Assembly: GCF_016432865.1 (NCBI RefSeq)
Contig: NC_067399.1
Coordinates: 621,860,001 to 621,924,000, forward strand
Direction of reading: 5' to 3'
DNA: 64,000 nucleotides
Source of the DNA: Antechinus flavipes
Taxonomy: Eukaryota
The notes under the pieces were generated by a model. That model worked only from the letters and a program-made list of their open reading frames with translations. It was not told the DNA's origin and searched no databases. Positions 40,831-64,000 of this stretch are shown one piece after another (position 1 is the first letter of the stretch; each line of letters starts with the position of its first letter). Position numbers and translations under genes: made by a program.

Positions 40831-41040
40831 CGCGGAGCAGGAGCCCTCTGGGAGAGACAGAGTACGGGAGACGCCGCAGCCGCTCTGCCTTTCAGTCACC
40901 CGCCAGGAGCTGGGAGAGTCACATGAGTTCCGAGGTCAGATGACTCCCTGGCAAGCTTCGCCACGGGATTGGATGCGCCTGGATGACTGCGCCTGCGCAC
41001 CGCTTGAGACCCCGCCCCTCACTCAGTCTCCAATTGGAGG
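40311..41040 (-). promoter_or_regulatory. HEXA CpG island and promoter: CLEAR/M-box-like GTCACATGAG (40918-40927) and GTCAGATGAC (40935-40944), CCAAT box (40967-40972), NRF1-like TGCGCCTGCGCA (40988-40999), GC box (41010-41018)
   Basis: Dense CpG and motifs read directly, 90-190 nt upstream of the ATG. MiT/TFE control of lysosomal genes is established knowledge. Confidence 0.75.
40545..40830 (-). CDS. HEXA: HEXA exon 1 (signal peptide, [20 protein letters not shown]...VWPWPQ...RHQP)
   Basis: ATG at 40830-40828; donor G|GTGAG after 40545; lies in a CpG island. Confidence 0.96.
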
Positions 41041-43586
41041 AGGGGAAGTCTCCTCACTTGCTTATCTTGTACTTTTCATGGGAAATAAATAAGTTTAGTT
41101 CCTCCTCACAGCAGTCCGACCTTTGCATTGAAGGTAATACCGAGGACAGTCAGTGTATGGCATCTGGCCAGGAACTTAACCTTGCTATCATGGTAAAGGG
41201 ACCCCAAGTGGGGCGAAGAAGAGTCGAGCATGATTTAACAACAATAACAAAATGTACCCAATAAATCAACATTTCATTTGTTTCTCTCTCTCTCTCCCAT
41301 GTATCGGGCGCCGTGCTGGGAACTAGGGACACAAAACCAAACGTGCGCCACTCCTCGCGCTTACAATCTGCGACCAGAAATTTCACGGCCGTAAGATGAA
41401 TTCTCTTTTGGCTACAACGGCTCGAGGAGTAGAGGATTAAAGACGGCATCAACCGAGAGAGTGACGCGGATCCTCCGAAGTACTGCGATCATCGCAGCCC
41501 ACACACGGTCTCGCGCCTGGGGGCAAAGACATAAACCTTGGCTTGGAGCAATTTCTAATCTGAAGCAGCCCTGTCACACAAACTTCTTCCCCGTGTCTCG
41601 TGAAGGAAGTGGATTAAAAAGGGGGTTTTAGTGCTAAAAGTCATTCCCCTGTGAGGGGAATCTTTGCTGTTGTTGTTCAGTCATTTTTCATTGGTGTCCA
41701 GTCTTCGTGACTCCGTTTGGGGTTTTCTTGGCAGAGATACCGGAGAGGTTTGGAGGGAATACCCCATGAAATCATGATCCTGACCACTGATTTAGCAATG
41801 AGAGGAAAGCGTTTTGGGGTAAGGGCATCCCCAGGACACAAAGACTGCCAGCCAGAGAAGAAAATTCTGGAGAGTAGGAATGGAGAAAGAAAGGAATGGC
41901 CCCTAATTGCTGCTTATTGATTAATTGGTAACGCTGAATCTCCCTAAACCAATAGAACGACTCTCAGATTGTGGGCACACGATCCATCATTGGACTTAGA
42001 GTTATAGCCTTTTCTACTTGGTTGTATCTCCCAGGAGGCATAGCCTTCAAAAGACCAGGAGCATTCTTATGCCTTAATGGTGTTAAGGGGTCCCCTGAAT
42101 GTGTCTTTTTGAATTTCCATATTTTCCAGAAATACTGGATCCAGAGTATCCAAGAGGCCCTGATGTGTTAAGATTGTAGTCTCCTTTGGGCTGACATAAT
42201 TTGTTATTTGCACCCCAAGCTGGACTCCCTATGTGTCTTTGGGAGTCAAAACAGATGTCAATCAGTCCATACCAGACTGAAAACTATTGGTGCAGCTGGA
42301 ACCTGGGTAAATAAGCAGTTGCCATAGTCCAGCAGTTCCCACGGGAAAAGAATGCAGCTTTTGCCATCTTCCTTATTCATGATTTCTCCTCACTTTTGGC
42401 AGAGAGTTCTTTCTCCACCCCTACTGCCCTTTTGCTCCTGCCATATTACCCCCAATTAGGAGAGGACTGCCATTTCTCCTCTCTTCTTTGTCATACTCTC
42501 TTAAACATGAAAGCTTCTGTTTGGATTGTGAACTCTCTGCACTTGCATAGGATTCCATATACATGTTTATTTCTCTAAAAAAAAAAAAACCCAGTTTTTC
42601 ACATTTGTTTCATAGAATTGTGATTTCCTGTTAATAATGGGACATTAGGGTAAGACAGTAGTAGAATATTGCTATTATTATTTTATACTTTATAACTTAT
42701 CAAATGATTTCACATTTATTTTCTTACTTGATCCTCAATCTTGTGAGGAAGTCTGGGCCATCATTTTTCTCATTTTACAGATGATGAAACAGACTGAGTC
42801 AGATGCTTTTTCCAAGGTAACAAAATTAATGAATTATCAAAGTGACACTTAACACAGTTCTTAATGATAAAATCATTATAAACATAGAAAGTTACCCTGC
42901 TTCAGACAAACCTGGCATGTTGCTGAAAATCTTTGCCAATGGTCCATTTGCATCATTGTTTAAATCCAGTCTGATATTTTAGTCACTGCTAGCATTTCCA
43001 AATTTTCATTGCTTTTGAGGATGGCCAATAACAAAGCCAATAACAGTTGGTCTCATGTCTTAAGGGCTGTTCTTTAGGGCTCTGATCAGACTTCATGAGT
43101 TTAATTATCATCTCTCTGCAGATGATGTTAAAGTTTCTTGGAGCCTCAAATGAGAATTGGGTGAATTAGATGGACACTAAAGGTAGATGAGCAGCCCTGA
43201 AAGGGCTCGGCAAGTCCTCACACCAGAGATGTTCCTGAATAGTCCATACACTCCAGTGTCCTAACGGAGCAACCAAAACAAATTCATTAAGGACAAATAT
43301 TATCTGTCACTCTTCTAAGCACTAATCTCCAGTAACTCCCTATTGCCTCTAGGATAAAATAAAAATTCTATTTTTGGGGCTTCTAAAGCTCTGTATTGCT
43401 TTGTGCCAATCTATCTTTCCAGCCTCATTTTATATTACCCTCCTTCCGATATTTTTGATCAGATAGGTGTTTTCTATTCCTCCATGTCCCATCTTCATGC
43501 TTTTGTGCTAACAGTTGCCCATGCAAATGTACTCCTTCCTAATTTCTGCTTCATAGAATCATTTTTCTTCAAGATATAACCCAAAC

Positions 43587-44686: not shown

Positions 44687-44791
44687 ATGGCAGGCCCTGA
44701 GCCAACCACAAAAGAGCTAATGGGACCCAAAGTCCTGACCTTCCACACTCCTCGGGTTCAGAAGGTTAAAGGAGATCACTCCTACCAGAAG
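44687..44791 (+). CDS. TMEM202: TMEM202 exon 1 coding (MAGPEPTTKELMGPKVLTFHTPRVQKVKGDHSYQK)
   Basis: gcaATGg context; donor AAG|gtagaa. Confidence 0.85.
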
Positions 44792-46811
44792 GTAGAAGGC
44801 CCTTTGGGGAAGGCGCTGACTTTGAGGAGAAGTTGAAATTGGGCAGAGGCTGATAGAGTTTGGGTCGCTCTGATGATTATTTTTTCCCTCATAAGAGACA
44901 AGTTTTACCTTTGTCATGGAATAAGGGGGTGGGTAAGGGTTTGTAAGAGACAAACACTCATGGGAGGCCTTGGGATCCTGGAATCCCATAGGTTTCTGAG
45001 AAGGGCCCTGTTCTGTAGGATGTAGGAGCTGTGTCTTGATGGGGGTATGTGAGGGGGTTGATTTTATTTGAGTTGAGGGATGAGTCATTCTCAATGATGT
45101 TCACTTCCACAGCCAGTTCTACCTGCCCAAAACCACTGGGTTGCCTTGTTGTCCCCATGGCAGCAGCAGCACTTCATGAAGCAGACCCATCTTTATATCC
45201 GCACATGCTGTACCGGGCTGTGTGCGTTCACTTTAGTCCTGCTCCTCTGCATCTCCCCAATGCCTTGGGTGACGTTCCTCCTGGCCAAGAATGGCCTTGA
45301 GCTCCACGCGGGACTCTGGACCCTCTGTGAACACCACCTCTGCTGGAGCCACGTGCCCAGCCCACCCTGTGAGTTTTCCCCAGAGTTTTCTCTGGTCCCT
45401 AACCCAACACTCCGATCAATTCCCAATAACACCAGAGCCCTTTTTTCCTTACCCTCCTCATTGCCCTTTCTAACATTTTCCAGTTCCTTCTCCTCAATGT
45501 CCAGCATTTTTCTTCTTCAGATTGTGAAAATGGCCAAATTTATCTCAGAAGGCAGCATGGTGCAGTGAGTAGTGATTGATGTTGTGTAAGGAAGACCTGG
45601 ATTCAAATGGCTAGTGACATACTGATGTCCTTAGGCTTTCTGGGTCTCAATTTCCTGAGGAGGAGGATGGAATTGATGATTTCTGAAGATCCTTCCAAGC
45701 TGTAAATCTATGATCTCTTTTCCTGTATGTCCCTTCTGCCCCTCTAGAATAGTCCTTGCTGACTTTCAGGTAATTAGGGAAAATTTTTTTTCCTGTTTTG
45801 ATCTCTTCTCACCTGCTATTAGGAAAGGATCTGATATCAACTATTTATAAGTTGTAAAGTAATGAGACTACTTTGTTGAAGTTCATGCTTTTCAAGAATA
45901 AGCTTTTTTGATGCTTTTTATTTTTACAACAGAATCAATTTTGGATATACCTACCCCCTTAATAAGCTCTCCCTTATCGCAAAGAAAAACTGAGGGACAC
46001 AGTGAATTATATTTGACAATATATAGTTCCCCATCTCTTTGGAAAAAGGAGGGAGGTGGTTCCTCATTCTTTTTTTTGGGTCAAGATTGGTCCTTAGACT
46101 TACTTGGCTTTCAACTTTATATTAGTGTTATTATAAGCTACATTATTGTAGTGATTTGGTAGACTGTTCTTTAATTATATTTGCTTCATTTTGCATCCAT
46201 TCATATCAATTTTTCTATGTTTCTTTCAATTCCTCATATGTGTTATTTTTTATAAGACACTAATATTCCTTTATGTTCACAGATCACAGTTTATTCATCT
46301 ATTGTCTAACTGATGGACACTCCATTTGTTTTCAGTTTTTTACAGCAGGGATGTGTCACACTATATTCTTACTTGTGTAAGGAATACTTTCAAAGTTGAA
46401 AATCCTCTGATTATATTTGTCATTGGCATATGTGAAAATGAACTTCTCTTTTGATTAAACTTATTTTAACTTTAACTTTGTCTGAGACCAATGATTATTA
46501 CCCCCACTTTTTTCTGTAACAAATTCTACTAATCATTGTTGTTTTATATCTCTTATTTTCTATTTCTGATGACTTCTCTGCTTTACTCCTACTAGATATT
46601 TTGCCTAGCCATTACTTAGCCCCACCCCCAATTTTACCCCAAGAATCCCTCCCTCATCTTTCTCCTCTAATGCTTTCCCACCTCTTTATCTCATTCTCAT
46701 TAATCTACAATCCCTTCTGTACCCTTCTTATTTTATTTTCCCCTCTTATTTCTTAATAAATTTAGAAGACTTTTATACATACATACACACATACATACAT
46801 ACATATATATG

Positions 46812-46852
<41 letters not shown>

Positions 46853-49800
46853 ATTGTTCCTTCTTTAACATATTCCTGATGTGAATAGTATTCTAGAACT
46901 ACCATTCCCCTTCCCCCATCCAATTCTTCTGTGTCAGTTCTTGCTTTTATATCTCATTCATATAACCTAATTAATTATTCTTTTTACCTTTTCCTACATG
47001 GTTTTGCTTTTTAGAATTATATCATATTCAGTTCTGTCCCAATCTTTCTTTTGAACTACTCACTTGCTAATGGCAATCTTATATTGGCTTATATTTTCAT
47101 GTATAAAACAGTTTGTCCTTATTGAGTCCTTTGAAATTAATCTTTGATGTATGCCTTATATTTCTCTTGGATTTTATATTTCAAATATTCTATTAAGTTC
47201 AAGTCTTTTTGCCATGTAATCCTGAAAATCTGGCAGTTCATTGAATTTCCTTAAAAATTTTTTTTTCTTAGGTTCATGCTTAACTTTACTGGGTTTGAAA
47301 TCTTAATTCTTTTGCTCTTCAATATATAATGTTCCAAGACCTAGTCTTTTAATGTAGCCACTGCTAGGTCGTGTATGATTCTGTCATATTAGAATTTTTT
47401 TCCTTTCTTTCTTGATCTAAGGATTGAAGTTTAACTATGATATTCCTTTAAGTTTTTCTCACAGTGCCTGGTGGATTTTTTCTGTTTCCACTTTCCCACT
47501 CTTGTTCTAACACTTTAGGACTTTTTTTTGGGGGGGGGCAGTGAGGTAAATGGGGTTAAGTAACTTGCCTGAGGTCACATAGCTCATAAGTGTTAACTGT
47601 CTGAAGCTGGATTTGAACTCAGATCCTCCTGACTTCTGGGTTGGTGCTCTATCTATTGCATCTAGCTGTCCCCAACAATTTTCTTTAATTATTTCTTATA
47701 CTATTATTTCAAGATTCTTTTTTTTAAGTAGTAGCTTTCAGGCAGTCAAATTATTCTTTTTTTTTTCTCTTCTTGATATGTCTACAAATCTGTTTTTCTT
47801 ATGAAATGTTTCACATTTTCTTCTATTAAACATTTTTTTTTGTACTTTTACATTTTGTTTTTATTCTTTCTTAGTCTCACAACTTCACATGTTCTTCTTG
47901 TCCAATTCTAATTTTTTTACTTAAGATTCTGGATCTCCTTTTTTAGTTGGTTGACTTTTTTTTTTTTTTTACATAAATCTTGCTTTTCTTGGATTGTTTA
48001 CCTATATATTATTTGTATATAATGTATCTGTATATATATGTGTATATATAGTGGGGAGGTGAAAGTTCTTGAGGCTGGGATGGAGGCTATTGTTCATCCT
48101 ATCTAAGCCCAGGGCTTACAGCTTGCTGGTTCAGAGGAATTCACCTGGAGGTGTTTATAGTTCACATGAGTCAACCTCTGGTCCTGATACCTTTCTTCTA
48201 AGAGATGCTATCTGATTGTCCCAGAAGGACTTCTGTTTTTATCCAATTCTAACTTGTTTTTGCCACTCTATTTGCCCTGAGGTGCAATTTTGTCTTGTTT
48301 GTGAGGGAAATCTGGAGAGTTTAGAATGTTATGACCTATTTCACCACCATCTAAGAGTAGCCTTGAGCTTCATCCCTTGTGCTTCATCTTCACATAGGCA
48401 TACCACTGAATTTTCAGACAACAAGATGATCCAATGGTTTAGATTTCTGGGTGTGGAGTCAGGATGACCTGTTTAAATCCTGCCTCAGAGCCTCATGAGC
48501 TATTTGATCCTGGCAAGGCACTTACCCTTCATGTACTTATATATAAAAGAGGGAATTGGTCTTAATGGTCTCTAAAATTTTTTTCAGCTCTAACCCCATG
48601 ATCTTAAACTCATTATATCCCAAACTAAGCTAATTTCTCTTTTAAAATCCATTCTTTCTTTCCCCTACTCTAGTTCTATTGATGGGATCCCCATTGTTTC
48701 CAGGGATCAGGTTCAAAGTGATAGATACTCCCCACTCCTCACCCCCATTTCTCTATTTTTATTGCTAAAAGGAATCAATTCTACTTTCATAATTCTTCTT
48801 ACATTTCTCTTTCCTCTCCCACTTTCACTCCCTCCCTCCTTTTTTAGATCCTTATCACATTGTAATAATCTCCAGAGTGGTTCTCCTGCTTCCTCTCTTT
48901 TGTTTCTAATCTAGCCTTCATAGTCTTGCCAAAATTACCTCTTTAATGTTTTGATTACCCAACTACCTTTCAAGTCTAACATTCAGTGTCCTTTGCAAGT
49001 TGTTTTCTTTCCAAGGGCTCATCCTAATTACATTCTTCTATTTCATCTACTCTCTTATAGATGAACTGGCTCCTCACCATTCCCTAGCTTCTTCCACCTT
49101 CATGTATCTCTGCATACATCCTTAGATCTTCCTTCTGTTAAGGCCTAATTCAGATGTCACTTTTCAAAATTAAATTTTAGTTTTTCAATGCTCAAACACC
49201 TATTTTTTTCCTCCCTTCTATCCTTTCCTCTTCGGGGTTTATATCTTGGGAATTCCTTGGAATCACAGCAACTCTTTTTCTTTTCTTGTATACTGATTAT
49301 TTCAGCAATGTGCTCCAGACAACTCTGTTGGGATTGTTGGGAGCTTTGTAGGCTGAGCCTGAAATCCTAGGCCCTCTAGGTGATTTCTCCTCTGCATTCC
49401 TTGTTAAGGGACCAGATGCAAAACCTGCTTTTTTCTGCTCCCTGCTCCCATGTTAGGGAATTGCTGAGTCTTTTCTAGAAGCCCCTTTGGGAGATCTCCA
49501 TTCCCCCTTCCCTCCTCTCCCTCCCAATTTCCTAACCTTGCTGTTGGCCTGGGCCCTTGATTGAGACTCTGCTGACCTAACTTAGGGCTCTGGAAACTGA
49601 GTCTTAACCTGCCTCTGTCCCTCAAATTCTGTTACAGGACAGTTTCTGTCCTGGCCACTTATCTGTAGATGGAATTTATGAACTGAGACTATTTCCGGGG
49701 TCCTCAAACTTTTAAAATAGGGGGCCAGTTCACTGTCCCTCACACTGTTGGAGGGCCAGACTATAGTAAAAACAAAAACTTTGTTTTGTGGGCCTTTAAA

Positions 49801-52800
49801 TAAAGAAACTTCACAGATCTGGGTGAGGGGGATAAACATCCTCAGCTGCTGCATCTGGCCTGCAAGCCTTAGTTTGAGGACTCCCATGGATGATCCACTC
49901 TGGTTTTTCCTTTTATTTCCCAATGCCTTGACATGGCATTCTTCTTAGATTTTTATTGAACCAGTTGTGGGGGAATCTAGACTATACTGTTTGTTGCTTC
50001 CTATTCTGCCATCTTGACTTGGTCAAACTTAGATGCTGTTTCCTCCATAAAACCTTCCCTGATCCCCTTGCTAATTGTGATCTGTCCCTCCTTAAGTGAC
50101 AAAAGAGATACTATATTTCTTACTTAGGCACTTGTGCATTCTGACCAGTGTTATTTGCATCTTATTCCCAATTGCATCTAGTAGTTATGCTTCACACAAG
50201 GCAAATTCCGGTCCTGATACATTTCTTCTAAGACATGTCCTCTGATTGTCCCAGAGGACTCCTGATCTGTCCCAACTCTTACTTGTTTTTACTACTCTAA
50301 CCTTTCCCTTCCCCCAATTAGATTGTATGATAACAGGGCAAAGATTGCATTGTTTTTCATTCATTTATCTCTAGAATCTACATGTTTTGAATTAAATTCT
50401 ATGACCCACAAAAAATGATAGTCTAGAGGTTGACTTTCTCACTATGATAATGCTTCCAGCTCACAGTAGGAGTATGTCTGAAACAATTTAGAAATGAAAT
50501 TACCCAGTTTGATTACCTTCATCACCAAAGTTGGTGCTTCCTTATTTAGGGACATCTAAAAATTAAATTCATGCTTAGAATATTAGTGACTCTAGGAGTG
50601 TCATATCAAAAAGTTTTTGGATCTGAAGGTGATTACCAAATAGAGTTAATTCCCCAAATATTTAAACCATGGCAGCCTAATTGGAGCATGTTGTGGCCAG
50701 CTAGTGCCAGCCAACGTCAATTCTTGTGGAGGACCAGTTTTACTCTGTCAGGCTCCCTGAAATGCCCGTCTCCTTATTTTATAGCCACCCTCACATGCTT
50801 TAATGTGAGCCTGTTATCAGACTGCTTCCCCTTCCAGAAGTATGCATGCTTTTACAGTTTTCTCTCATTGTGAGTGAAAGGAAGGCACCATTCTCCATTA
50901 CTGCAATTTTAGGCATTAATGAGCATTTGGGAGAACGCGGGAGAACTTTGGTGATGTTCCTGAGTTCACATCTTGTAGTGGCCATTTATTCTGGCTGGGA
51001 GTCCAGCTAGTCCTGCCCTTGTCTTCCTTAGCCCTTCTCTTCCTGGCCCCCACACATCCTTGGGGTAGGAGTTAGAGGGCTGTCTCCTGCCTTCTATCCC
51101 CAGTTCCCAGCCTGGCTTTTTGCTTTCTGCTTCACTCTGTAGACTACCTCCAGATCTCCAGGATCTTTTTCCTCCTCTCTGCCCTCTCTGCCTTCATTCT
51201 CCTCGGCTGGGTCCTCAACTCCTGCCGGCATGGGAAAGAGCCCACTGCTCATTTGGATCGAGAGGTAGCCATCCTCTCTTTGATTTCAGGTACAGACCCA
51301 TGCCAGCGGGCTAAGCCTCTGGTGAAACTGTGAAGTCCTCAGTGAATTTTGGCCCTTTTTTCTGTGCCCCTCTTTTCCACAACTGCCTTTTCTAGGTCCC
51401 AGGCCCCCCTAACAACCTCATTCACAAATTATTTAGGCCTGGCTCAGAGCGGAAGGCACTGGAATGGCAAAATAGGATTCTGGGGAGGACAATGTTCCTT
51501 CCAAAAAAAATGAAATTTTAATGGTGAAATCTCAGACTCCAGGTAGCCATTTCTGGTCATAGTGCAGGCAGGAAAGTTTCCTGGAGATAATAAATGTAAA
51601 AGAAGAAGCACTGGGCTATGTTGTAGTTGCAACTTTGCTGTAAATAACCCAGGCAAGTCCCTTAGCTCCTCCTGACCTCAGTTTTGAATGTTGATCTAGA
51701 TAATTTCTCTGGTCCCTCCCTGCACTGACAATCCATAAATTCTATGATGCCAGAGATTTGCCCTGCCCCATTATAAGAATCCCTTCCATCTGTAAAATGT
51801 TTTAACTCCACAAATCTCTTTAAAAGAGACAAACCATGAGACAAGGAGAGCAGATGCTGCTGCCCTCAGGTCGGAGCTGGGGAAGGGAAGTCTAAAAAGA
51901 ACAGATGACTTATCCAAGGTTGCACAGCCAGTATATTGCAGAGAACTGGCCTTGGCTCCCAGACCTGGTCATCTCCAAGTCCATTGCCATTGCCATGCCT
52001 TCTGGTCCCCTTGGGTTTCTCCACATAGCCAACCCCAAAGCACGGGGCACAGACATTGGGCTGGGGGTGGGAGGACAGGAAGAAGGGGTGAGAGATGGCC
52101 AGACAGTAGCTCCAAAGGATAATCCTTGTGCTCTCCTTCCAGGAACCAGTCTGTTTTTCTGCCTTGTGCTTTTTCTGATGCAAGTCAAAAAGTATACTAC
52201 CTACAAGATGGGGTCATCTTACCTGTGGATCTTCCACTTCAATTGGTGGGGTAGCTTCTTCTACATAGTGGCTGGTGAGTTAAAGCTGAAGCGAAGGGGC
52301 AAAGGGAAAGCAAAGGGAAACCCTTCTGGGGAGGGTTAGCACGCAGTGGCAGTCTGGGAGGTCACTGCCTTAGAGGCAAAGCATCCTGGCCTTAGCACGG
52401 GCACCTTGGTGACTTTCTGGCCCTCAGTTTCCTCCTTGTTCAGATGAAAGGGATGCACTAGATGCTTAACCCTATATCCCCTGTCCTGAGGGATAGTCTT
52501 GCTCTGGGTCTCCCCTGTGCAGGGAGAAAAAAATTCTGTGATTCTCAAGTCCTTTGTATCATGTTAATAAATGATCCTTTACAAAAAACAGGTATAGATT
52601 CCAAATGACCATTTTATATAAGAGGAAACAGAATTTCAGCAGAGTTCAACAGAGTTTATCAGTATTTCATCTTTAGATCCTGCAAATTGGGCACATAATT
52701 CTCAGAAATGAAAAAAAAATCATGGCAACAAAGCAGTCCAGAGGTCCTGTGAAGTCCCTTTACTTCACCTATAACTAATATTGAATGCAACCCACCACTT

Positions 52801-53070
52801 GAACCTTGCACTGACTTTTCTCTCTCTCTCTCTTTTATAGGAGTCATCTCCTTCTTTAACTACAAAACCTTTGGGGTTTTGCCCTCTGACACAGATGCCA
52901 ATGAAATTCTCTTAACAAGGAGAAGATTAGGGATTAATCCAAAGATGTGGCCAACATCAGCAAGAGAAGAGGAAGAGCCAGAATCCGAGATGGTTGTGGA
53001 CCCAATAGTGGAACTAGAGTCCATAGTACCCTCTTTGGATAATAAGGATGCCACAAAGCCACCAAAATAA
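44687..53070 (+). CDS. TMEM202: Transmembrane protein 202 (claudin/PMP22-like 4-TM), whole gene; 5 exons, 870 nt, about 289 aa
   Basis: Exons 105,256,147,132,230 nt join in frame. LTFH, HLYIRT, KNGLEL.AGLWTLC.H.LCWSH.P.PP, YYLQ.SR.FFL and G.IS.FNY match recalled human TMEM202. Divergent from HEXA as in human. Start codon choice (44687 vs 44720) is uncertain. Confidence 0.93.
45113..45368 (+). CDS. TMEM202: TMEM202 exon 2 (PVLPAQN...HLYIRTCC...LWTLCEHHLCWSHVPSPP)
   Basis: ccacag acceptor, gtgagt donor; 256 nt. Confidence 0.95.
45905..47900 (-). mobile_element. Cluster of old L1 fragments with a SINE (about 47525-47670) and a CA/TACA microsatellite
   Basis: T-rich L1-like text; SINE core gggttaagtaacttgcctgaggtcac; bounds approximate. 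Confidence 0.55.
49695..49886 (+). mobile_element. OC1 (OposCharlie1)-type non-autonomous hAT MITE, about 190 bp
   Basis: TIRs c(c)ggggtcctcaaact / agtttgaggactcc; subterminal gggccagttcactgtccctca..ctgttggagggccagactatag and gcatctggcctgcaagccttag match recalled OC1 ends with CpG decay; 8-bp TSD not evident. Confidence 0.78.
51143..51289 (+). CDS. TMEM202: TMEM202 exon 3 (YYLQISRIFFLLSALSAFILLGWVLNSCRHGKEPTAHLDREVAILSLIS)
   Basis: ctgtag acceptor, gtacag donor; 147 nt. Confidence 0.92.
52143..52274 (+). CDS. TMEM202: TMEM202 exon 4 (GTSLFFCLVLFLMQVKKYTTYKMGSSYLWIFHFNWWGSFFYIVA)
   Basis: ttccag acceptor, gtgagt donor; 132 nt. Confidence 0.93.
52841..53070 (+). CDS. TMEM202: TMEM202 exon 5 (GVISFFNYKTFGVLPSD...KPPK*)
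   Basis: Long pyrimidine tract plus tatag acceptor; TAA at 53068-53070, overlapped by AATAAA (53066-53071). Confidence 0.88.
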
Positions 53071-56000
53071 ATAGGGATAGGAAAATACAATTCTAGTTTA
53101 CCTTAGAGATAGGACGTAAGGGTGGGGGAATTGGGGCCAAGATATGAGAGATACTCTATTTCCTTTACAACTGGGGCTGTTTGGAAGGATGATTGTATTA
53201 GAAATAACTCCAAGGTCACAAAGAAAGATCCTGCCCTAGATTGTAACCCACTGAAAAAGATAACATTAATGTTTATGAAATAGCATTTGTATTGCCTAAG
53301 GTAACTATAATTTATTGGTCACAAAGCAAATTATTAGAGCAAAGATTATCCCAAAGATAAAATGTTCAGGGCCATGAATAGTGGAGACTGGTAATAGATA
53401 TGGCATGAGCACCAAGAAATTTCAAGAGATGCTAATGGTCATAATATAGCTTGGATGCGGAGGAAGAGTATGTAGTATGGTTGGCTGGGAATACTTGTTT
53501 CTTCCTAGTGGTCCTCAGAGGCAGAGTTCATTTTAGGGAGACAGAAAAGTATAGTCCTAGGATCCCAGCTAAGTAAGGTTAGTTCTCATCTTCTTTTATG
53601 ACTTTTTAAATATTAAATTTAAAAAAAATTTTTAAATACCAAAACAAAAATAAAATGATGTGACTTTCTGAATTTCTAGCACATAAAAATAAGATCTCAT
53701 GTGAAAAATTGAATCTTCTTCTGTGACTATGGACAAAACACTTAATATTTTAGATCCCTCAAAGAAAATGAGATTGATCTCTACCCTCTTTCAATTAAGC
53801 AGTCTTTTATGAAGGGCCTATTATGTATAACATAACCAACCCTGGAGAGAGGGGAAGAATATTGATTATAAAAGACTTGAGATTTCTTGCTATTTGTATT
53901 ATAGGAAGTCTTTCATTGTGGAGCTGTGGTTTATGATTTTCTGGTTTTCCATTTTTAATCTTGCATGGAGCCTCCACCCAGAAGGGAAGTTTGTTGGGGG
54001 CCATGTTCTGAACTTGTTCACTCTTTGCTGCCTTTGACCATGTTTCTGCCAGCTGAGCAGATCTACCCATATAACAGGAACATCTGCAAAAATATACTGC
54101 ACAGATTTAATCTATCTTGGAGCAGTGTATTCACATATTTTCCTACCCCTATCCACACATACCTCCACACATCTGATCTTGGAACCTGCCAGACTTAGGG
54201 GCAATTGTGACAGCTGAGAGTTGCTGACAGCCATCCAGTTCCAGCTCTCAATAGTTAACAATCACAGGGGGAATCAGTGTGCAAATAAATGTATTCATAT
54301 GAGATACATACAGAGAGATCGAAGGTAATCTAAAAGAGAAAAGAGGAAACTCGGTATGATTTCTTCAGAAGATAGGATTCGATCTCAATTCTGAAGGAGT
54401 CCTTTCTCTAAACTTCATAGATGTGTGTGAGCTCAAACAGCACTTAGGATCATAGATAAGATCCTATCACCTTTATTACACTACTGTGGGTAACTGGGAA
54501 ACAGTCCAGTTCTATATATGGTTCACTCCTCAACCAACTCTTGGGCTTAAAAGATCTCTAAGATAGACTTGGAAATGGGGAAAACAGGTAATAACTTGTT
54601 TCCCACAAGCCACAATAATGAGATCCACCTCTCAAGTGCCAAAGTCAGGAATTTTCCCAACAAAAAGGGAAAGCTGTGAAGACATCTCTGGACCTGCTGT
54701 CCCATCACTTCAATCTGGCCAATTGGATAATTGTCACATCTTACCTAGTTGTCCTGAAAACTTGGTTAGCTGTAGAACATACTCTTGAAATACATGTTGC
54801 TGGGAATAGATTTCCTTCTTTCCTCTTTCCCTACTGCATACACTTGAGTTAAACAGTCATTCTGAGTCTTTTGTAGTGAAATGTAGGAATTCACCTAGAG
54901 TCTTCACTGCAGCAAGTGGACCTAATTTAGAAGACAAAACATACAAGTAAATATAAATTCCATAAAATAATTTTAAGAGGGAGTGAACATTAACAAGGCT
55001 GATAGGGAAAGGTTGCCAGCAGACTTAGCACTGAGCTGTACTTTGTAGGAAGGTGGGATTCTAAGAAGGCAATAAGGAGGGAGTGCATCTAGACAGACAG
55101 ATTTGTGCCAAGTCACAGAAACTCAAGGTAGAATGTCATATACAGAGAAATAGTGAGTTGGATTAAAACCGAGAGTGTGTGAAAGAGAATAACATGGAAT
55201 AAAAGGGGAAAGATAAATGAGAACTATATCATAGAAGGATTTAAATGCTATGCTGAAGATTTTGTACTTTATAGGTAACAGTAAGCCACTGAAGACTTTA
55301 GGGGAGTGACATTCATCTTATCCTGTATTTGTCTAGGTTAAAGTAGAACAAATGAGGTCATCCCTGATATTCAGATGCTTCCAAATCACCTACTCAAACA
55401 TATCTAAGATTGTAAAAGTTTTTTCCTTCCTCCTGAATTTGGTAAATCAAGAGAAATAGACCTATTTTTCTCTACTGGATCTGGGAAAGCATTCTGGAGT
55501 AATTTAAATAACGATGCCGACAAATTTTGAGAAATTGGCATGTTTTTTCATGCTTCTGGATCAGTAGAAAGTGATCATATAGGGAAGAAACATCATTCAA
55601 GATCTAGGCTAAAGAGGTATCGGAAATGTTAAAGAGAGGATTTTTATTCAAGTATGGGTTGGACTAGATGGTCCTTGAGATTCCCCTTGTTTTGGGTTGA
55701 GTCTCAATCTGGTAATTTAGAATTAATATTAGAACAAAAATGGATCAACAGTTAACAAAAAAACAGATTTAGCAGCAGACTATTCAAGATAGCCACTGAG
55801 GACACCTGAATTCGATTCAGCTTAATTAAGCTTTCTTATCTGCATTCAGACCATAATCTACCAGTCAAACCTTAGAGATGACCTACTCCAAGTCCTCTTA
55901 TTTTTTCCTACTGCTCCTGATTTTGCACCACCATCATATCCTTCTATTATTTACCCTCTCCCACGAGGGGAGTGGAGAAGGCATATGCTTCAAATTCTCC

Positions 56001-57765
56001 AAAGCCATTGGTCAGAGCATGGGATGCCATTTTATAGTCTGCCTTATCCATTCATTAACTTTTCACTGCCTCTTAGGTTTTCTTTCTCTTTTTCAGGACA
56101 CTAGACCAACTTCCCTGTCAAATAATCACTTCATATCTAATCAGACACAAAAAAGCTGCTACAGAAAGTCCTAGATTTTATTATTTTTCTTCTATGCCCT
56201 GTAGATACTGTCATCCTCTGAGACAAACTGAGGAATACCCACACGTCCACTGAATAAAACATCTCTTTAGCAGAAGGAACAGAAGGGAAACACTCACTGA
56301 ATTGATAATATGCCATTTATGGGGATAGAGAGAAAAACTCTGATTCATTTTATCCCTATTGGGCAGAGGATTAAGAAGAGGGGTCCAAGGGTCACATTAA
56401 TAAAGAATCAGGACTGAGTTGTGCAGCCAGAATAAAATGAATCTATCTTTCACTGGAAAGGGAGGAGAAAAAAAAGGGCTTTAAACTAGAGTTATTTCTT
56501 CAGTCCTGGGAATTCACTTGACTTTTATAGAGATAACATCAGTGGAAAGTCAGGGTCATGTCTGATGCTTAGAGGCAGATGTTGCCAAGAAACAAATGAG
56601 AGGATTGTCAATAAAAAAACTATTTAGGATCCAATCCAGAGGAAGCTAAAAAAATTTTGGCTGTTCTTAAAACATGCATGTTTCTGCGTGACATTGCAGC
56701 AAATTGAGAGAATTCTTTGCTGTTATTGTCTTTTACTAGATCCTTGCAGTCTGACTCCAAGCCCTAGAGAATGCAGGTTTTTATCCTGCTTTTGCTCTCC
56801 ACAGATTTCTGTCTCTAGACCTTCAGCTCCATAACCCATATCCTAGCTACAGATGTTATCCAATTTATATGATGCTTTGGACTTTTATCAGAATGGGAAC
56901 TTTGTGGTTGTGTCATTCCACAATCACAGAACTGGAGAACTGAAAGGAACCTCGGTGGCCATCTAATACACAATCTGATACACAAAAAGAATCTCACTAT
57001 AACAGAATTGGTCAAATGCTTGTCCAGCTTCTTTTGGAAGACCTCTGAGGAGGGATCACTGGTCACTTTTCAAGATCTCCCCATTCACTTGGTTAGCTCT
57101 GGTTGTTAGAAAGCTTTTCAAGGCTAAATTGCCTTTTTTCAATCCACTCACTGCAGCTGGTTTTGATCTCTGGGATGAAAGAACGCACGTGATACTTCTT
57201 CTACTTTCTGTCCTCTTTCAAAACAAGTAGGCTTCCACCATCGAAACCCATCCAATTATAGCTCTGGTCACTGCATTAGAATGGCAGGAATCCCAGCGTG
57301 GGAATTTGATTTTTGATTGCATATTGCAACATATCTATATAGGTCTTTCCATATAGGTATATAGATCACAGAGTATTGACGAACATAGAAATTAAGTGAC
57401 TTTCCTGGAGTTGCCTAGTTAGTAAGGATTGATGATAGGATTTGACCCATGGTCTTTTTGACTCCATGCCCAGGACATTATCCACTGTGCCATGTTGCTT
57501 TTGGTCATGACATGGGAGTAACTCCTATTATCACTTCCTGCACATAAAAGTCTGAAGCATCATATAAATTAGGTAACATCTGTAGCTAGTAGTAATGGAC
57601 TTTGACTCCTATATCTGATACAAGGTTATATTGTGTTCTAAGTTCATGAAATAACTATACATACACATATATCTTATTGAATCATCATAACACAGTGTAT
57701 ACTATTCCTAATACATTAAGAAGGACAATGACAATGATATGAAGAACAGAAGACCAGTTTTCATC

Positions 57766-57799
57766 CCCCTATTTCATGTTGTTGTTCATGAAATAGGGG
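57766..57799. repeat. Perfect inverted repeat, 13-bp arms, 8-nt loop
   Basis: cccctatttcatg-ttgttgtt-catgaaatagggg. Confidence 0.9.
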
Positions 57800-58404
57800 C
57801 ATCATAATGTAATTTTTGTGCCTAGAAATGTTTCATTACTTGTAGTCATAATCATTTATATATTTACATATTTTCTTTTCAGGCTGGGTTATATTTAAAA
57901 TTGATTTTTCAAACTGTATCTCATTTAATTCTTGTAATAATCCTGTGAGGATCAAGGTAAAGTGGGAATTATTATCCCTGTTCCACAGATGGGGAAGATT
58001 GAAGCCCAGGAAATATGATGGGTATGCTCAGAGTTTGGATGCTTGGGCAATGTGATTATTCTGTTGCTCAGATAGCATTATGTGCAGTGATCCCAAAAAG
58101 GGAATAAACTCTGGAAATAATCTTGGATCATTTCTGTATCATATTACTGAAACATTGAGTCCTTCAAGATTTATGGAGTACAGTAAGTACTTTGATAATT
58201 GTACTACGTAGAAGGAAAAAAGATGAGCCTTAAAAGAGAGGTGGGGAGATAGTATGGCATGAGCCTTGGACTGGGCATTTGGAAACCCATTTTTTAGGTC
58301 CCATTTTTCCAGGGAGATTCCACATCACTCCAGTTCTCACTGATCTCCCTCTTCTCTGGATTCTGAACTTGTTTTGGCAATCTAGGAAAATCTATGGATC
58401 CAGA

Positions 58405-58595
58405 TGCATGAGGAGACCCTGGCCTTTAGTGGTCCTGATCAATATCTTGCCACTAGACCTGGATGGCTGCAAAGTAGAAAGTGAGACTGGTGACTTTGCA
58501 CAGACCTCCCTCACTTAAATCAAATTCACTTGCAAATCATGACACAACTTTCCTGAAGTCATGGTTCTCTTTGAGAATGGAGGACAAACACAACA
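58405..58595. mobile_element. Marsupial interspersed repeat (MdoRep1-like)
   Basis: ctccctcacttaaatcaaattcacttgc...ctctttgagaatggaggacaaaca matches a recalled common marsupial repeat. Confidence 0.5.
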
Positions 58596-60019
58596 ATGGA
58601 TCCATTCTCAAAATGATATTTTTAGATACACAAAATATGTAGACTTGTAAATGAAATCAATTACTTGAAATGCAGTTATCAAAATATTGGGAAAAACAAC
58701 AATCCCAAAACCAAGTTTTCATACTCTAGATTAAAAACTCCTGACATAGGCCAGATACCTGATTTGACTGATGAGGAGATTGATATCAAGAGAATTGAAG
58801 TGACTTCCCAGATATACTAATCTGGATATATTTGTGTGTATGTATATATATATATAGTGATATAGTTTGTAGCCCAGCATTAGGAGCTGGTTATTTGAGA
58901 ACTGTTTCTTGTTGACCAGTTCCTAAAGAGGAGGTATTTTTGTGTCCTTAGAATGGCCACATCATTTTGATCAGTCTCTAGAGAGATTATCTTATTGATC
59001 TTTGGAAAGTTGGTACTTTATTGGTCTGTCTCTGCAGTCTTGGGCCTGGTACAGCAAGGTTTTTCTGGGGGGCATTGTTTGCAGTTTGTAATGTCTTAAA
59101 AAATAAAACACTCCTCCTCCAAACCCATTTTTGGAATCATAAAAAAGTTTAAAAATATTACAGCACTTAAAGAAAGAAAACAGGTATTGTTCTAGGATTT
59201 ATTAATTACCATTGAAATCCAAATAAGAAGATTGAAGTGTAAACAAAAAAGATACTCATATTGCTCTATGCTTATAAGATAGAGTCCAGAGATGATAGCA
59301 CATTTTGTTTCTGTTCCTAGAATGGCTGAGAATGAGGGATCTCTTTAGGGTCTCCAAGAGGCAGAAGTGCTAAAGGTGATAGGTTATTGTGGAACCAGTA
59401 GGTTGAGGCCTTGCAAATGCAAGCTGCCTAAGTCAAGGAGAGCTCTTATAGGATGAAAACAGATCAGGAGTGGGAATCAGGCCATTTGGTTACCACATTT
59501 ACCTCCTGGGTGAGATACATAGACCTGGACTCAAAAAAATAAACAATCTCCATTCTGAAAAAAGATATACAAAAGATTAACATAGAAAGAGGCATGTAAG
59601 GCTGAAAAGAAAAAAAAAAGATGAAAAATACAACCATGATATAAAATTTAAAATGAATTATATTATGACAACTATAAAACTGAAGAGAAGGAATATGAGA
59701 ATAGTGAACAAAAAATAAAAGAATCTTTATCAATAAAGTTATTTCATATTGAGATTAAACTCTAAAATAAAGCTATTTCCAAGTACAGATTTTGAATGAA
59801 TTCACCAAAGTGGTTTTGGTTTTCAGACCTATTCTGGCCTTCCTTCTAATTTTACTTTTAGCTCCCATTTCACTTTACAGAAAATACAATTTGCAGATTT
59901 CTTTGCCATTTTCTGTCTAGCCTTGAGTTCTGTGTTTGTAGATGGTCCAGCTCTCACTCTTGACTCTCTTTTCTTCATTACTCTTTTGTTCCCTTTCTTA
60001 CTCCACCTCCCTACTAAAC

Positions 60020-60860
60020 AATACTTTATTTTTTCCAATTACATATAAAGATAGTTTTCAGTATTCATTTTTGTAAGATTTTGAATTCCAACTTTTTTCC
60101 CTTTCTTCTCCTCTCCCCATGACAGCAAGTAATCTGATAGAGGTTATACATATAAAATCCTTTTAAACATAATTCCACATTGATGAATGTTGTGAAAGAC
60201 GAATAAGAACAAAAAGGAAAAACCAAAAGAAAAGAAAAGAAAAAAACAACAAATAAAGTGAAAATAGTACGCTACAATCTTCATTCAGACTCCATAGTTC
60301 TTTCTAATGGATATGGATAGCAATTTCCATTCACAAATCTTTGGAACTGTCTTGGGTTATTGTACTGCTCAGATGAGCTAAGTATCAAAGTTGAGCATTA
60401 TACAATGTTGCTCTTACTATGTACAATGTTCTGCTCCCTTCACTTAGCATTGGTTCATGTAAATCTTTCCAGGCTTTCTGAAATCCAACTACTCCTCATT
60501 TCTTTCTTTCTTTCTTTCTTTCTTTTTCTTCCTTCCTTCCTTCCTTCCTCCCTCCCTCCCAGCCTCCCGTCCCGCCCCCCCTTTCTGTTTCTTTGTTTCT
60601 TTCTTCTTTCCTAAGGCAATTGGGATAAGTGACTTGCCCAGAGTCACACAGCTTGCTCATCATTTCTTACAGCACAATTGTATTCTATCACATTCCTCTA
60701 CCACAACTTGTTCAGCCATTCCCCAATTGATGGACATCTTCACAATTTCCAATTCTTTGCTGCCACAAAAAGAACTGCTCTAAATATTTTTGTACATGTA
60801 AGTTCTTTTACCTTTTTTTAATGTTCTTTTTGGGATACTAATAGTGGTATTACTGGTCCA
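60020..60860 (-). mobile_element. Old L1 3' end with internal (TTTC/TTCC)n tract and SINE fragment
   Basis: L1 3'UTR-like text on both sides of 60500-60660. Confidence 0.65.
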
Positions 60861-63099
60861 AAAGGAACTCACTCTTTTTTCCAACCCTCTCCTATGCCCC
60901 TTTCTGCCCCTCCCCACATTCTTTCTTTTACCCCTCCACTAAGACCCTCAGTGGGCAGCCCTTCCTTCCTTCATAGTTCTTTGTGGTGAGACTATCCAGG
61001 ATTAATGTGGGATGGGGACAATGGAAGGAGTTACCATTCTTGTTCCCACTGGCCCATTTTGGGTGTTCCTGGATTGACAAAATAGAAACTTTCATGGCTT
61101 GGGAGAGGAAGATCCATTTTTTTTTTTTTTTTTTTGGTTTCCACTAATATTTCTGATCCCTAAACACTTGAGGATCTCTTAGTCTCTGTGGCCAGATCTT
61201 GCTTAGATAATACCCTAATGAGTGCCTGACAAAGTCTATTTCTTTCATTTTTTTTTCATAAAGCAAAAGATTTAGTTTCAGAAGTCAAAGGCTGTACAAT
61301 GGGTTTCTCTGATTTTCGTTTTTGTCGTATGAAAAACATTTCAATGTCTTGTATCAGGAGGAAAGGTCTTGAGAACTTGTGAATTCAGTGGAATGTGCCT
61401 TTCCCTTGTACAGCTGTGGCTTGTGTTAAGACACCTTCCCACATTGAATAGGTATAGATCTAGGTGTAGATCTCAATGGTTCTGCCAGGGAGGTTTACTA
61501 TTTAGACGAAGCCATCTTTATCAATGAGGACATGGTGAATGGTTGGAATGCAGATATCACAAGACACTTTCTCTAAGTGTTCTAGATATTGTGGCAATCA
61601 GTGAATGAAGAATCTTGTGAAAGGTGGCACTGATGTTACCAGGAAGGTTAAACCAAGAAGTCAACTAGCATTTATTAAGAACCTATTATGTGCCAGGTAC
61701 TGTGCTGAGTTCTGGAGATACTAAGAAAGGCCAAACAATCCAGTTCCTACTTTCAGGGAGCTCACAGTTAAATATGGAGGACAACTCATTACAATATAGT
61801 CAACTTGTCACTCTTTTAATGGCTTTCATCTCTAAAACAGGAGGTAGTACTTACAACTGTTAAAACAGGAGGTGATACCTACAGTTAGATTGATGAAGAG
61901 ACGGGTAGAGCGGTAAATACTGGGCTGAGTTCCCTTCCTTGCTTTCTGTCTACTAGAGAGTGAGCTGCTTGCAGGCTAAAATTGTATGTATGTGTCATCT
62001 TTGTATCCTCTGTACCTCATATAGTGCTTTGCACACATTAAGTGCTTATGAAATGTTTCTTGATGTACAGATTATAACTTCTTCAGGACAGAGAATGTGT
62101 TTGTAACTTGGATTTCTCATTTTGCATGAAATTCTTTTGAGTGATGGAAAGAATACTGAAGTCTCCCTGTATATGAGGGACAGAGTTGGTGAGAGAGCTT
62201 TGGAGAGGAGAGATTTTCTTTATTCTTTCAACTAAAGGAGAGATCCTGACTTCATGCAATGGACACTTTCCCAAAGTTTTTAGGGAGACAATATGGACAT
62301 CAAGGACATACTGAAGAGCTGGCTTCCTCTACATGTGTTCTAAAGGGAGCTGGGACCATTTATCTGTCTGTTGGCCAGTCTGTCTTTGCCTTTCTGCTTG
62401 TCCTATTCTACTCTATTCTATTTTATGTCTTTTCTGTTCAAAACTCTTATGCTAATTCCACCATTCACTATAATGCTGTGTCAACATTCTCTCAACCACT
62501 TAGGAGAATTTTATTTGAGATTTGGTAGGAAAACATGGTTATATCTCTTCAAAATTTTAAATCCTTAGTTCATAGCAGAAGACTATACCTACTAGATACT
62601 TAATAATTGTTTTTTTTTTTTTTGCATTGAATTAAGTGAAGGAATGCCACTTTCTTATTCAAAATCTTTAAGTGTTTCTCTATTACCGCCAAGATAAAAT
62701 GGAATCTGTTTGATCTGACCTACCACGTGGCTCCAACCTGCTTCCCATCTTATTTATGAGTACTCCTTTTCATCTCTGTTCTAGCCAAACTGGACTAGTA
62801 GCAGTTGTCTGAATTTGACCCACCATCTCTATGCACTTGTGCAAGTTTCCAGCCTTCGACAGCACTATGCATTTTTATGGACAAGTCATTTCTCCTTTCT
62901 AAACTCTGAAATGATTATTTTGCAAAATGATAAGATTGAACTAGGTGATCTTAAAAGCTCCTTCCAGCTTTAAGTTCTATGATGTCATGTTTTCCTTCTT
63001 GGGGAACCCTGAAGCCAATGGTCCTCATCACTTTCTACTTGCCTCCTTCAAATTTCTTTGGGGATCTCTGTTTGAAATAGTTTGCTGGGAGGAGGAACC

Positions 63100-63348
63100 C
63101 CCCTCCTCATAGTTGGGATATTCCAGGAAGCAATAAGCACCCACATGAAAATAGCTCCAGTTCCTCTCCTTAATCCACAGCCTATCCTTTTATCCGATGG
63201 TATCAGCCAGCGAGGAGGGAGGGGGAAGGGAAGCTGCAAGAGCTGGCCTGAAAGAACTGTGAGTTCAAGGGATGGGAGCGACGTGGGGGAAGATTCGTTA
63301 GGGGAAAAAGGCCCCTCTGTTCCAGCCTGAGTCTGGGAGTCTGGAGCC
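63100..63348 (+). promoter_or_regulatory. Putative LRIT1 retinal promoter; CRX/OTX2-type TAATCC at 63171-63176
   Basis: Motif seen directly; function inferred from the retinal expression of LRIT1. Confidence 0.5.
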
Positions 63349-63470
63349 ATGTGGGTGGCCATGGGAGTGCTCTGGTGTTTGGCTCTCAGGGAGCTTCCCC
63401 AGGCGCTTGGCTCCTGTCCTTCCCAGTGTACCTGTAGCCTGCATAGCCTCAGCGACGGCACCAAAAACAG
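63349..63470 (+). CDS. LRIT1: LRIT1 coding exon 1 (signal peptide and LRRNT start: MWVAMGVLWCLALRELPQALGSCPSQCTCSLHSLSDGTKNR); gene continues beyond the window
   Basis: Aligns without gaps to recalled human LRIT1 MRVALGMLWLLALAWPPQARGFCPSQCSCSLHIMGDGSKAR; gccATG Kozak; 122-nt exon ending AG|gtaagt. Confidence 0.9.
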
Positions 63471-64000
63471 GTAAGTGGAATGCTCAGGCGCTGCTCCAAT
63501 CCCTAACTTGCCTTCAGTTCTCAGAATAGGGACTCTATGTCTGGGAAGAGATGGATTAGAGGGGTCCCTCAGTTCTTGGTTGTGTTCCTTTTACCAAGTG
63601 GATTTGCATACAGATAGGTTCAAGATTTGGCTCCTTTTAGTTCTATTGTGACCTTGGGCAAGTGACTTAATCACGCTGGTTCTCTTTCTCCTCATTCATA
63701 AAACAAAGGGGTTAGACTCTTAAGTTTCCAGTTCCCTTGTAGCTCTAAATCCTATAATCTTTGATTTCTTGTGGGGGACCCTAACACCTTTTTAAAGGTA
63801 ATAATCATATTTCATGGTGATCAACTGAGATATTATTTGTGAAGCACTTAGCACAGTGCCTGGCATATAGAAGGTGCTTGATAAATGCTTGTTCCCTCCC
63901 ACTCCCATCTGGGTGATCAAGGATATGAGAATCCTGGACCTAAGCAAAAATGGGACTCTGATTAGAACACAGCAAAGCAAGAGGATCTTTTTTCCCCCCT

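Follow-up and report, generated by a model that had tools for sequence, protein, structure and literature searches.

A decaying RGR exon at a probable ancient junction between TMEM202 and LRIT1 in marsupials

RGR is a photoisomerase that contributes to sustained cone function in daylight. How might such a gene come to be missing from marsupials, and does any trace of its departure remain where it once stood? Its absence from marsupial genomes, mentioned in a first-pass annotation of this locus, is indeed reported in the literature (Borges et al. 2018, PMC5800076; Upton et al. 2021, PMC8058843), and the statement that no functional copy persists elsewhere in a marsupial genome rests on these two papers. 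Borges et al. also noted rearrangements in the region and could not validate the loss by synteny (PMC5800076). A literature search returned no paper that mentions TMEM202 together with LRIT1, and none on an RGR pseudogene in opossum.

The locus lies in a 64,000-nucleotide stretch of the yellow-footed antechinus, Antechinus flavipes (hereafter the window; its sequence is identical to GCA_016432865.2 CM028218.1). TMEM202 occupies 44687..53070 on the plus strand, in five coding exons whose limits were set by tblastn with the protein of the same species (44687-44791, 45101-45367, 51145-51294, 52130-52276, and 52840-53067). The annotated Antechinus flavipes TMEM202 (XP_051829940.1, 289 aa) maps to these five exons at 94-100% identity, and the exon-2 open reading frame matches TMEM202 of koala, wombat, and tammar, with E 2e-40 to marsupial proteins. 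Orthology to annotated proteins thus holds over all exons, which were searched singly, the full length being taken from XP_051829940.1. The stop codon, TAA at 53068-53070, is overlapped by an AATAAA hexamer at 53066-53071.

On the other side, coding exon 1 of LRIT1 (40 codons plus 2 nt) lies at 63349..63470 on the plus strand, followed by a GTAAGT donor at 63471; the gene start in the fetched locus L003 coincides with window position 63349. Its residues agree with LRIT1 at 40 of 40 positions in Antechinus and 39 of 40 in the Tasmanian devil, and every top match in the LRIT1-named list bears that name. Sequence comparison identifies the exon as LRIT1, an assignment that covers exon 1 (the only LRIT1 exon in the window) and draws on comparison with LRIT1-named proteins. 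Short metagenome and Logan fragments of this exon were also seen, and may be human in origin.

Between the two genes, from the end of TMEM202 at 53070 to the start of LRIT1 at 63349, lie 10,278 bp with 0 N and 0 CpG islands. Protein mapping of both genes bears out the adjacency and the distance of 10.3 kb given by the first-pass annotation, which had also found no intact RGR or ARIH1 exon here. That much stands, since the 10,278 bp yielded neither ARIH1-like sequence nor an intact RGR; an Rfam search of 53650-63348 likewise gave no match. The further statement that no RGR exon was recognisable was wrong: the minus strand carries a relic of RGR exon 1 at 55955..56030, found by tblastn (76 nt, or 25 codons plus 1 nt; MASHALTNGFGEFEAYAFSTPLVGE).

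This relic keeps its ATG (56028-56030) and a GT donor (55953-55954, just outside the relic itself), and a six-species alignment places its orthologues in Tasmanian devil, koala, and bilby. It stands head to head with LRIT1, the distance from ATG to ATG being 7.3 kb in Antechinus, 7.7 kb in koala, and 6.3 kb in devil, so that position and orientation relative to LRIT1 are orthologous in three marsupials, as expected of a unitary pseudogene. The sequence is evolving without constraint at the protein level and is disabled in some lineages. We regard it as a pseudogene because the bilby copy has lost its start codon (ATG to ACA), its reading frame (by a 1-bp deletion), and its splice donor, and because identity between Antechinus and koala (83% of nucleotides, the differences mostly non-synonymous) is no higher than that of the flanks. 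In opossum, whose interval contains a LINE, nhmmer with a profile of the marsupial relics did not recognise it; the range over which the relic is demonstrated is thus Australidelphia.

The ancestral arrangement is preserved in outgroups. Platypus and tenrec each have a gene of 295 aa with a 7tm_1 match head to head with LRIT1, 6.7 kb away in the former and 5.9 kb in the latter; from position, length, the 7tm_1 match, and resemblance to RGR sequence, we take this gene to be RGR. The marsupial relic has the same orientation and similar spacing (6.3-7.7 kb vs 5.9-6.7 kb), but marsupials keep only a decaying exon 1, with TMEM202 beyond it in place of the remainder of RGR and CCSER2. Because both outgroups keep an intact opsin gene in this position, the comparison marks the TMEM202-LRIT1 state of marsupials as derived. 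Platypus, moreover, is the kind of genome in which the first-pass annotation proposed looking for the marsupial adjacency as a sign of ancestry, and it has the opsin gene there. Neither the fetched bird locus nor the fetched lizard locus showed RGR in the 10 kb upstream of LRIT1. On human chromosome 15, TMEM202 is followed by ARIH1. Cattle have LRIT2, LRIT1, RGR, CCSER2 in that order (PMC12075139), while TMEM202, HEXA, PARP6, and ARIH1 form one block in pig (PMC4087325). These orders suggest that the flanks of the marsupial interval are an HSA15-type block (PARP6-HEXA-TMEM202) and an HSA10-type block (RGR-LRIT1), the TMEM202-ARIH1 side being taken from the pig block list and the human order.

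Other marsupials share the derived state. A single devil locus contains both the end of TMEM202 and LRIT1 and aligns collinearly with the window at 91%. Two opossum loci that overlap by 2,313 identical bases place the genes 17.7 kb apart, with HEXA upstream, and collinearity of the bilby locus extends from the last TMEM202 exon to a point 240 bp short of the LRIT1 ATG; the tammar TMEM202 and LRIT1 proteins have consecutive RefSeq numbers. The adjacency is thus common to Dasyuromorphia, Peramelemorphia, and Didelphimorphia, and given its presence in devil, bilby, and opossum it would be older than crown marsupials.

Collinearity by blastn with opossum and bilby brackets the junction between the two blocks at 53071..55954. 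The bracket runs from the TMEM202 stop on the left to the RGR exon-1 relic on the right, which gives a resolution of 2.9 kb and not of a single base; within it, opossum and bilby have orthologous sequence for 53071-55883, 66-76% identical. The proposal that the interval holds a rearrangement junction is in this way upheld and narrowed, and so is the proposal that RGR was broken or deleted there, the gene being truncated at the junction with its exon-1 relic left behind. RGR intron 1 of tenrec and platypus, aligned by blastn to the marsupial intervals, matched nothing beyond the LRIT1 promoter.

We favor, with a probability of roughly 80%, an ancient marsupial junction at which an HSA15q-type block carrying PARP6, HEXA, and TMEM202 was joined at the RGR-LRIT1 pair, leaving a decaying RGR exon 1. 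The partner at the head-to-head pair would have been an HSA10q-type block, and only the 5' end of RGR would have survived on the LRIT1 side, at its ancestral distance and orientation. The joining event would predate crown Marsupialia, and a break or deletion at the junction may have removed exons 2-7, which would be why no marsupial has RGR.

How the junction relates to the death of the gene is a separate matter, on which two accounts bear. A single inversion or reciprocal translocation in a stem marsupial could have cut RGR intron 1 and the TMEM202-ARIH1 spacer, the break itself depriving marsupials of RGR; we hold this tentatively, at rather less than even odds. If it is true, relics of exons 2-7 are predicted between ARIH1 and CCSER2 in marsupials. 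Alternatively, RGR may have died first, in stem marsupials of nocturnal habit where selection on it was relaxed, with rearrangement or deletions later removing exons 2-7 and the junction a bystander. The neutral evolution of the relic fits such a history, as does the span from the therian split to crown marsupials, which by our own estimate of about 80 million years leaves time for several events. So do additional lineage-specific deletions in the interval. One of about 2.2 kb, at 55889..55894 by blastn (61-66 bp into former RGR intron 1), is specific to dasyurids: the segment is kept in bilby and koala and missing in Antechinus and devil, bilby L010:24660-26834 is homologous to koala L005:8-2119 and falls exactly between window positions 55889 and 55894, and no break in collinearity between devil and the window occurs at the site. 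Devil has lost a further 1.1 kb of the interval, and bilby several kb. Nothing here contradicts the earlier death of the gene, but it requires more steps than one break would, and TMEM202-side DNA common to opossum, bilby, and Antechinus shows the RGR body already gone by the crown ancestor; we regard this order of events as possible, a little short of an even chance.

Remnants of unitary pseudogenes at syntenic positions are known elsewhere, for example those of vitellogenin in mammals. There, as here, what records a lineage-wide loss is a small piece of exon, evolving neutrally beside an ancestral neighbor. The RGR relic differs in that it abuts a chromosomal junction, which makes truncation by rearrangement a candidate cause, and not point mutations alone.

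It is very improbable that the exon-1 match is chance similarity, or a piece of another unannotated gene, with no trace of RGR here at all. The match is short (26-30 residues), and taken alone the Antechinus sequence scores E = 0.004 with the platypus exon (L007:3248-3331) and E 0.31 with the tenrec exon (L001:4062-4145), a score that 1 of 300 shuffled tenrec exons also reaches. Two independent queries, however, score at the same orthologous spot in three species: the platypus query gives E = 0.002 in devil and 5e-5 in koala, no tenrec shuffle reaches the observed score in either (0/300 each), and none of 300 shuffled platypus exons does so in Antechinus, devil, or koala (z 7-10; about 7 in Antechinus). 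Strand, distance to LRIT1, the ATG start, and the GT end are all as in the real exon. Similarity of the relic to RGR exon 1 is accordingly above chance.

The search for the rest of the gene used tenrec exons 1-3 and platypus exon 1 as probes. Tenrec exons 2 and 3 matched nothing in the intervals of Antechinus, devil, koala, bilby, or opossum. Relics of exons 4-7, which lie outside this probe set, could be hidden within 53071-55883 or within the corresponding longer intervals of bilby, where it is 6 kb to the relic, and of opossum. Single exons give Pfam too little signal for finding relics: even the intact exon 2 of tenrec has a 7tm_1 match of only E 0.0086, and its exon 3 has none. The PDB returned no RGR entry; tenrec exon 2 matched other opsins only, and the koala relic matched nothing. 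A functional RGR is a seven-exon gene for a seven-transmembrane opsin of about 291-295 aa; of this only exon 1 is recognisable. Runs of N are present in the tenrec locus (L001) and in locus L008.

That the adjacency is an artefact of assembly, a concern raised in the first-pass annotation, is scarcely credible, since the same collinear interval recurs in devil, bilby, and opossum assemblies from separate projects, the breakpoint is shared by independent lineages, and most of a 5.9-kb stretch is contained in runs that come from several studies and carry at least three organism labels.

For LRIT1, the consequences appear slight. The spacer that once separated it from RGR is kept over 7.3 kb (56031..63348, by blastn collinearity), in collinear alignments of about 74% to koala and about 91% to devil, and opossum conserves blocks of it at 57925-58297 and 62193-63348. 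A putative proximal promoter element lies at 63120..63207 on the plus strand, aligned by blastn to lizard at 81% over 90 bp, and a platypus blastn alignment at 63124-63473 takes it in. From these alignments, LRIT1 still has about 7.3 kb of ancestral upstream DNA, including the element conserved in lizard and platypus. The suggestion that the rearrangement set a retinal gene beside a new regulatory neighborhood therefore fails for the proximal neighborhood; given that its own promoter and some 7 kb of upstream DNA are kept, proximal regulation of LRIT1 is probably unchanged.

Borges et al. (2018) and Upton et al. (2021) found the same gene missing from the same clade, but described neither remnant nor junction; here, four marsupials carry a relic at the orthologous position, and the junction is confined to 2.9 kb. 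Together these supply the synteny check that published work had reported as blocked by rearrangements. The relic speaks for true loss at the orthologous locus and against a gap in assembly or annotation. Absence of RGR from an entire mammalian infraclass has been cited in the vision literature, previously without a physical explanation. From the relic, the loss is older than the divergence of the Australian orders, and from the shared junction it would be older than crown marsupials. How RGR was lost has now become a question with a testable prediction on the ARIH1-CCSER2 side.

The adjacency of TMEM202 and LRIT1 proposed by the first-pass annotation is real, with a gap of 10,278 bp, and both gene identities are upheld by matches to the annotated proteins. 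Full-length TMEM202 was mapped by aligning the annotated Antechinus protein P0192 (289 aa, XP_051829940.1) to the window, where it falls into five pieces, the last at 52840-53067 (100% identity) and followed, on reading the sequence, by a TAA stop at 53068-53070. Putative exon 2 lies in a stop-to-stop ORF at 45098-45565 that matches koala, wombat, and tammar TMEM202 (E 2e-40 to 3e-33). An AATAAA hexamer at 53066-53071 overlaps the stop codon, which suggests a very short 3′ UTR. LRIT1 exon 1 begins with an ATG at 63349 and ends at 63470, followed by GTAAGT; its 40 residues matched LRIT1-like N-termini in an all-against-all representative search, including a 621-aa tenrec protein named LRIT1, and agree with annotated Antechinus LRIT1 (P0110) at 40/40 positions and with the devil protein at 39/40. 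Fragments of this exon from metagenomes are possibly human-derived. No CpG island was found between the genes (53071-63348); the sole strong one in the window, at 40001-42000 (CpG o/e 0.65-0.76), may from its position between HEXA and TMEM202 be a shared divergent promoter. An A/T-rich tandem repeat with a 26-bp unit occupies 53603-53656. The window holds zero N bases; base 53349 corresponds to CM028218.1 base 621,913,349 (GCA_016432865.2), and the final 10,652 bases are 100% identical.

The same arrangement recurs across marsupials. The Tasmanian devil locus is collinear with window 52395-63997 at ~91% identity, and it opens with 662 bases from the end of an annotated gene of 324 aa, TMEM202 by tblastn. 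In opossum, TMEM202 and LRIT1 lie on one strand of CM051223.1 (the two loci overlap by 2,313 identical bases), 17,688 bp apart with no gene calls in between, and HEXA (a Glyco_hydro_20 gene) sits just upstream of TMEM202. Bilby is collinear from the TMEM202 last exon to 63106, 240 bp before the LRIT1 ATG. In tammar wallaby the two genes carry consecutive RefSeq protein numbers; the koala locus is collinear with window 55894-63991, and its first 2.1 kb matches the bilby interval. Adjacency is thus direct in three orders and partial in a fourth, which excludes misassembly and argues that the junction is older than crown Marsupialia. In a sequencing-run index, runs of several organism labels and studies contain most of a 5.9-kb stretch.

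Outgroups bear on the ancestral neighbors. In the tenrec and platypus loci, LRIT1 has a head-to-head partner of 295 aa with a 7tm_1 match, at distances of 5.9 kb and 6.7 kb, respectively. Its position, length, opsin-type PDB matches of exon 2, and resemblance to RGR sequence make this gene probably RGR (no RGR entry was found in the PDB). The two sauropsid loci differ from these two: in neither the bird Nyctiprogne (L011:1-10000) nor the lizard (L002:1-10000) was an RGR exon found in the 10 kb upstream of LRIT1. In the bird, LRIT2 comes after LRIT1. A cattle GWAS table gives the order CDHR1, LRIT2, LRIT1, RGR, CCSER2 (PMC12075139), and in pig ARIH1, TMEM202, HEXA, and PARP6 fall within one 500-kb block (PMC4087325).

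The interval had been described as holding no recognizable RGR exon; this does not stand, for a relic of exon 1 is present on its minus strand. Marsupial intervals were searched by tblastn with platypus RGR exon 1 and tenrec exons 1-3 (Pfam is too insensitive for single exons). The platypus query found minus-strand matches at orthologous places in koala (L005:2254-2165, E 5e-5), devil (L004:3659-3570, E 0.002), and Antechinus (window 56030-55950, E 0.004), and tenrec exon 1 hit the same spots. Shuffled platypus peptides never reached the observed score (0/300 in each species; z ~7 to 10), and shuffled tenrec peptides did so in 1/300 for Antechinus and 0/300 for both devil and koala. Like a real RGR exon 1, the Antechinus relic starts at an ATG (56028-56030); it comprises 25 codons and one further base and stops precisely where a GT donor (55953-55954) begins. 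The bilby orthologue, seen at the nucleotide level, has ACA for ATG, a 1-bp deletion, and no donor. Most differences between the Antechinus and koala relics alter the amino acid, and their 83% nucleotide identity is not above that of neighboring 200-bp windows, so the relic is evidently decaying neutrally. Tenrec exons 2 and 3 gave zero matches in all marsupial intervals, and no relic was recognizable in the opossum interval. That interval contains, at L006:2518-3582 (minus strand), an open fragment of 355 aa that matches the reverse-transcriptase domain RVT_1 (E 3e-35); its greater length of 17.7 kb is due in part to this LINE insertion, by which the opossum relic may have been erased.

The junction is confined to the stretch from the TMEM202 stop (53070) to the relic donor (55953-55954), a bracket of 2.9 kb in Antechinus and ~6 kb in bilby. 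Opossum and bilby both have sequence orthologous to window 53071-55883, which places the TMEM202 side within a few kilobases of the relic by the crown ancestor. RGR intron 1 of platypus and tenrec gave no alignment to marsupial DNA. The dasyurids (Antechinus and devil) lack, at window 55889/55894, a 2.2-kb segment common to bilby (L010:24660-26834) and koala (L005:8-2119); this site is ~60 bp beyond the relic donor, inside former RGR intron 1, and the absence is a later, dasyurid-specific deletion.

On the LRIT1 side, all 7.3 kb of spacer as far as the former start of RGR have been kept, so the new regulatory neighborhood proposed for LRIT1 holds only beyond the spacer. Within the spacer, 63120-63207 is 81% identical over 90 bp to the LRIT1 upstream region of the lizard Phrynocephalus, and 63124-63473 aligns with platypus; the former is, judged by this similarity, a putative deeply conserved LRIT1 promoter element. 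About 1.1 kb at 60879-61999, present in Antechinus, koala, and bilby and absent in devil (L004 joins 60878 to 62000), looks like a devil-lineage deletion. Two 46-bp inverted repeats (56843-56888 and 57544-57589; 91% identity, ~700 bp apart), one of which has a 44/44 match in the devil locus, possibly mark the termini of a small DNA transposon.

The absence of RGR from marsupials is published (PMC8058843, PMC5800076; repeated in PMC10530494), and Borges et al. (PMC5800076) noted that rearrangements prevented its validation by synteny. We found no literature naming TMEM202 together with LRIT1, or on an RGR pseudogene in opossum; what is new here about an already reported loss is thus the exon-1 relic, together with a junction that has been bracketed and dated.

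How the gene was lost may be framed in two ways. RGR may already have been a pseudogene, its body deleted around the junction, and this is equally compatible with the data. Alternatively, the loss may stem from one event at the junction: either an inversion on a chromosome bearing both blocks or a reciprocal translocation, breaking the TMEM202-ARIH1 spacer and RGR intron 1, would produce the order TMEM202(+) / RGR exon 1(-) LRIT1(+) exactly as it is seen. If such an inversion or translocation did occur, it would have joined DNA upstream of ARIH1 to RGR exons 2-7 and CCSER2.
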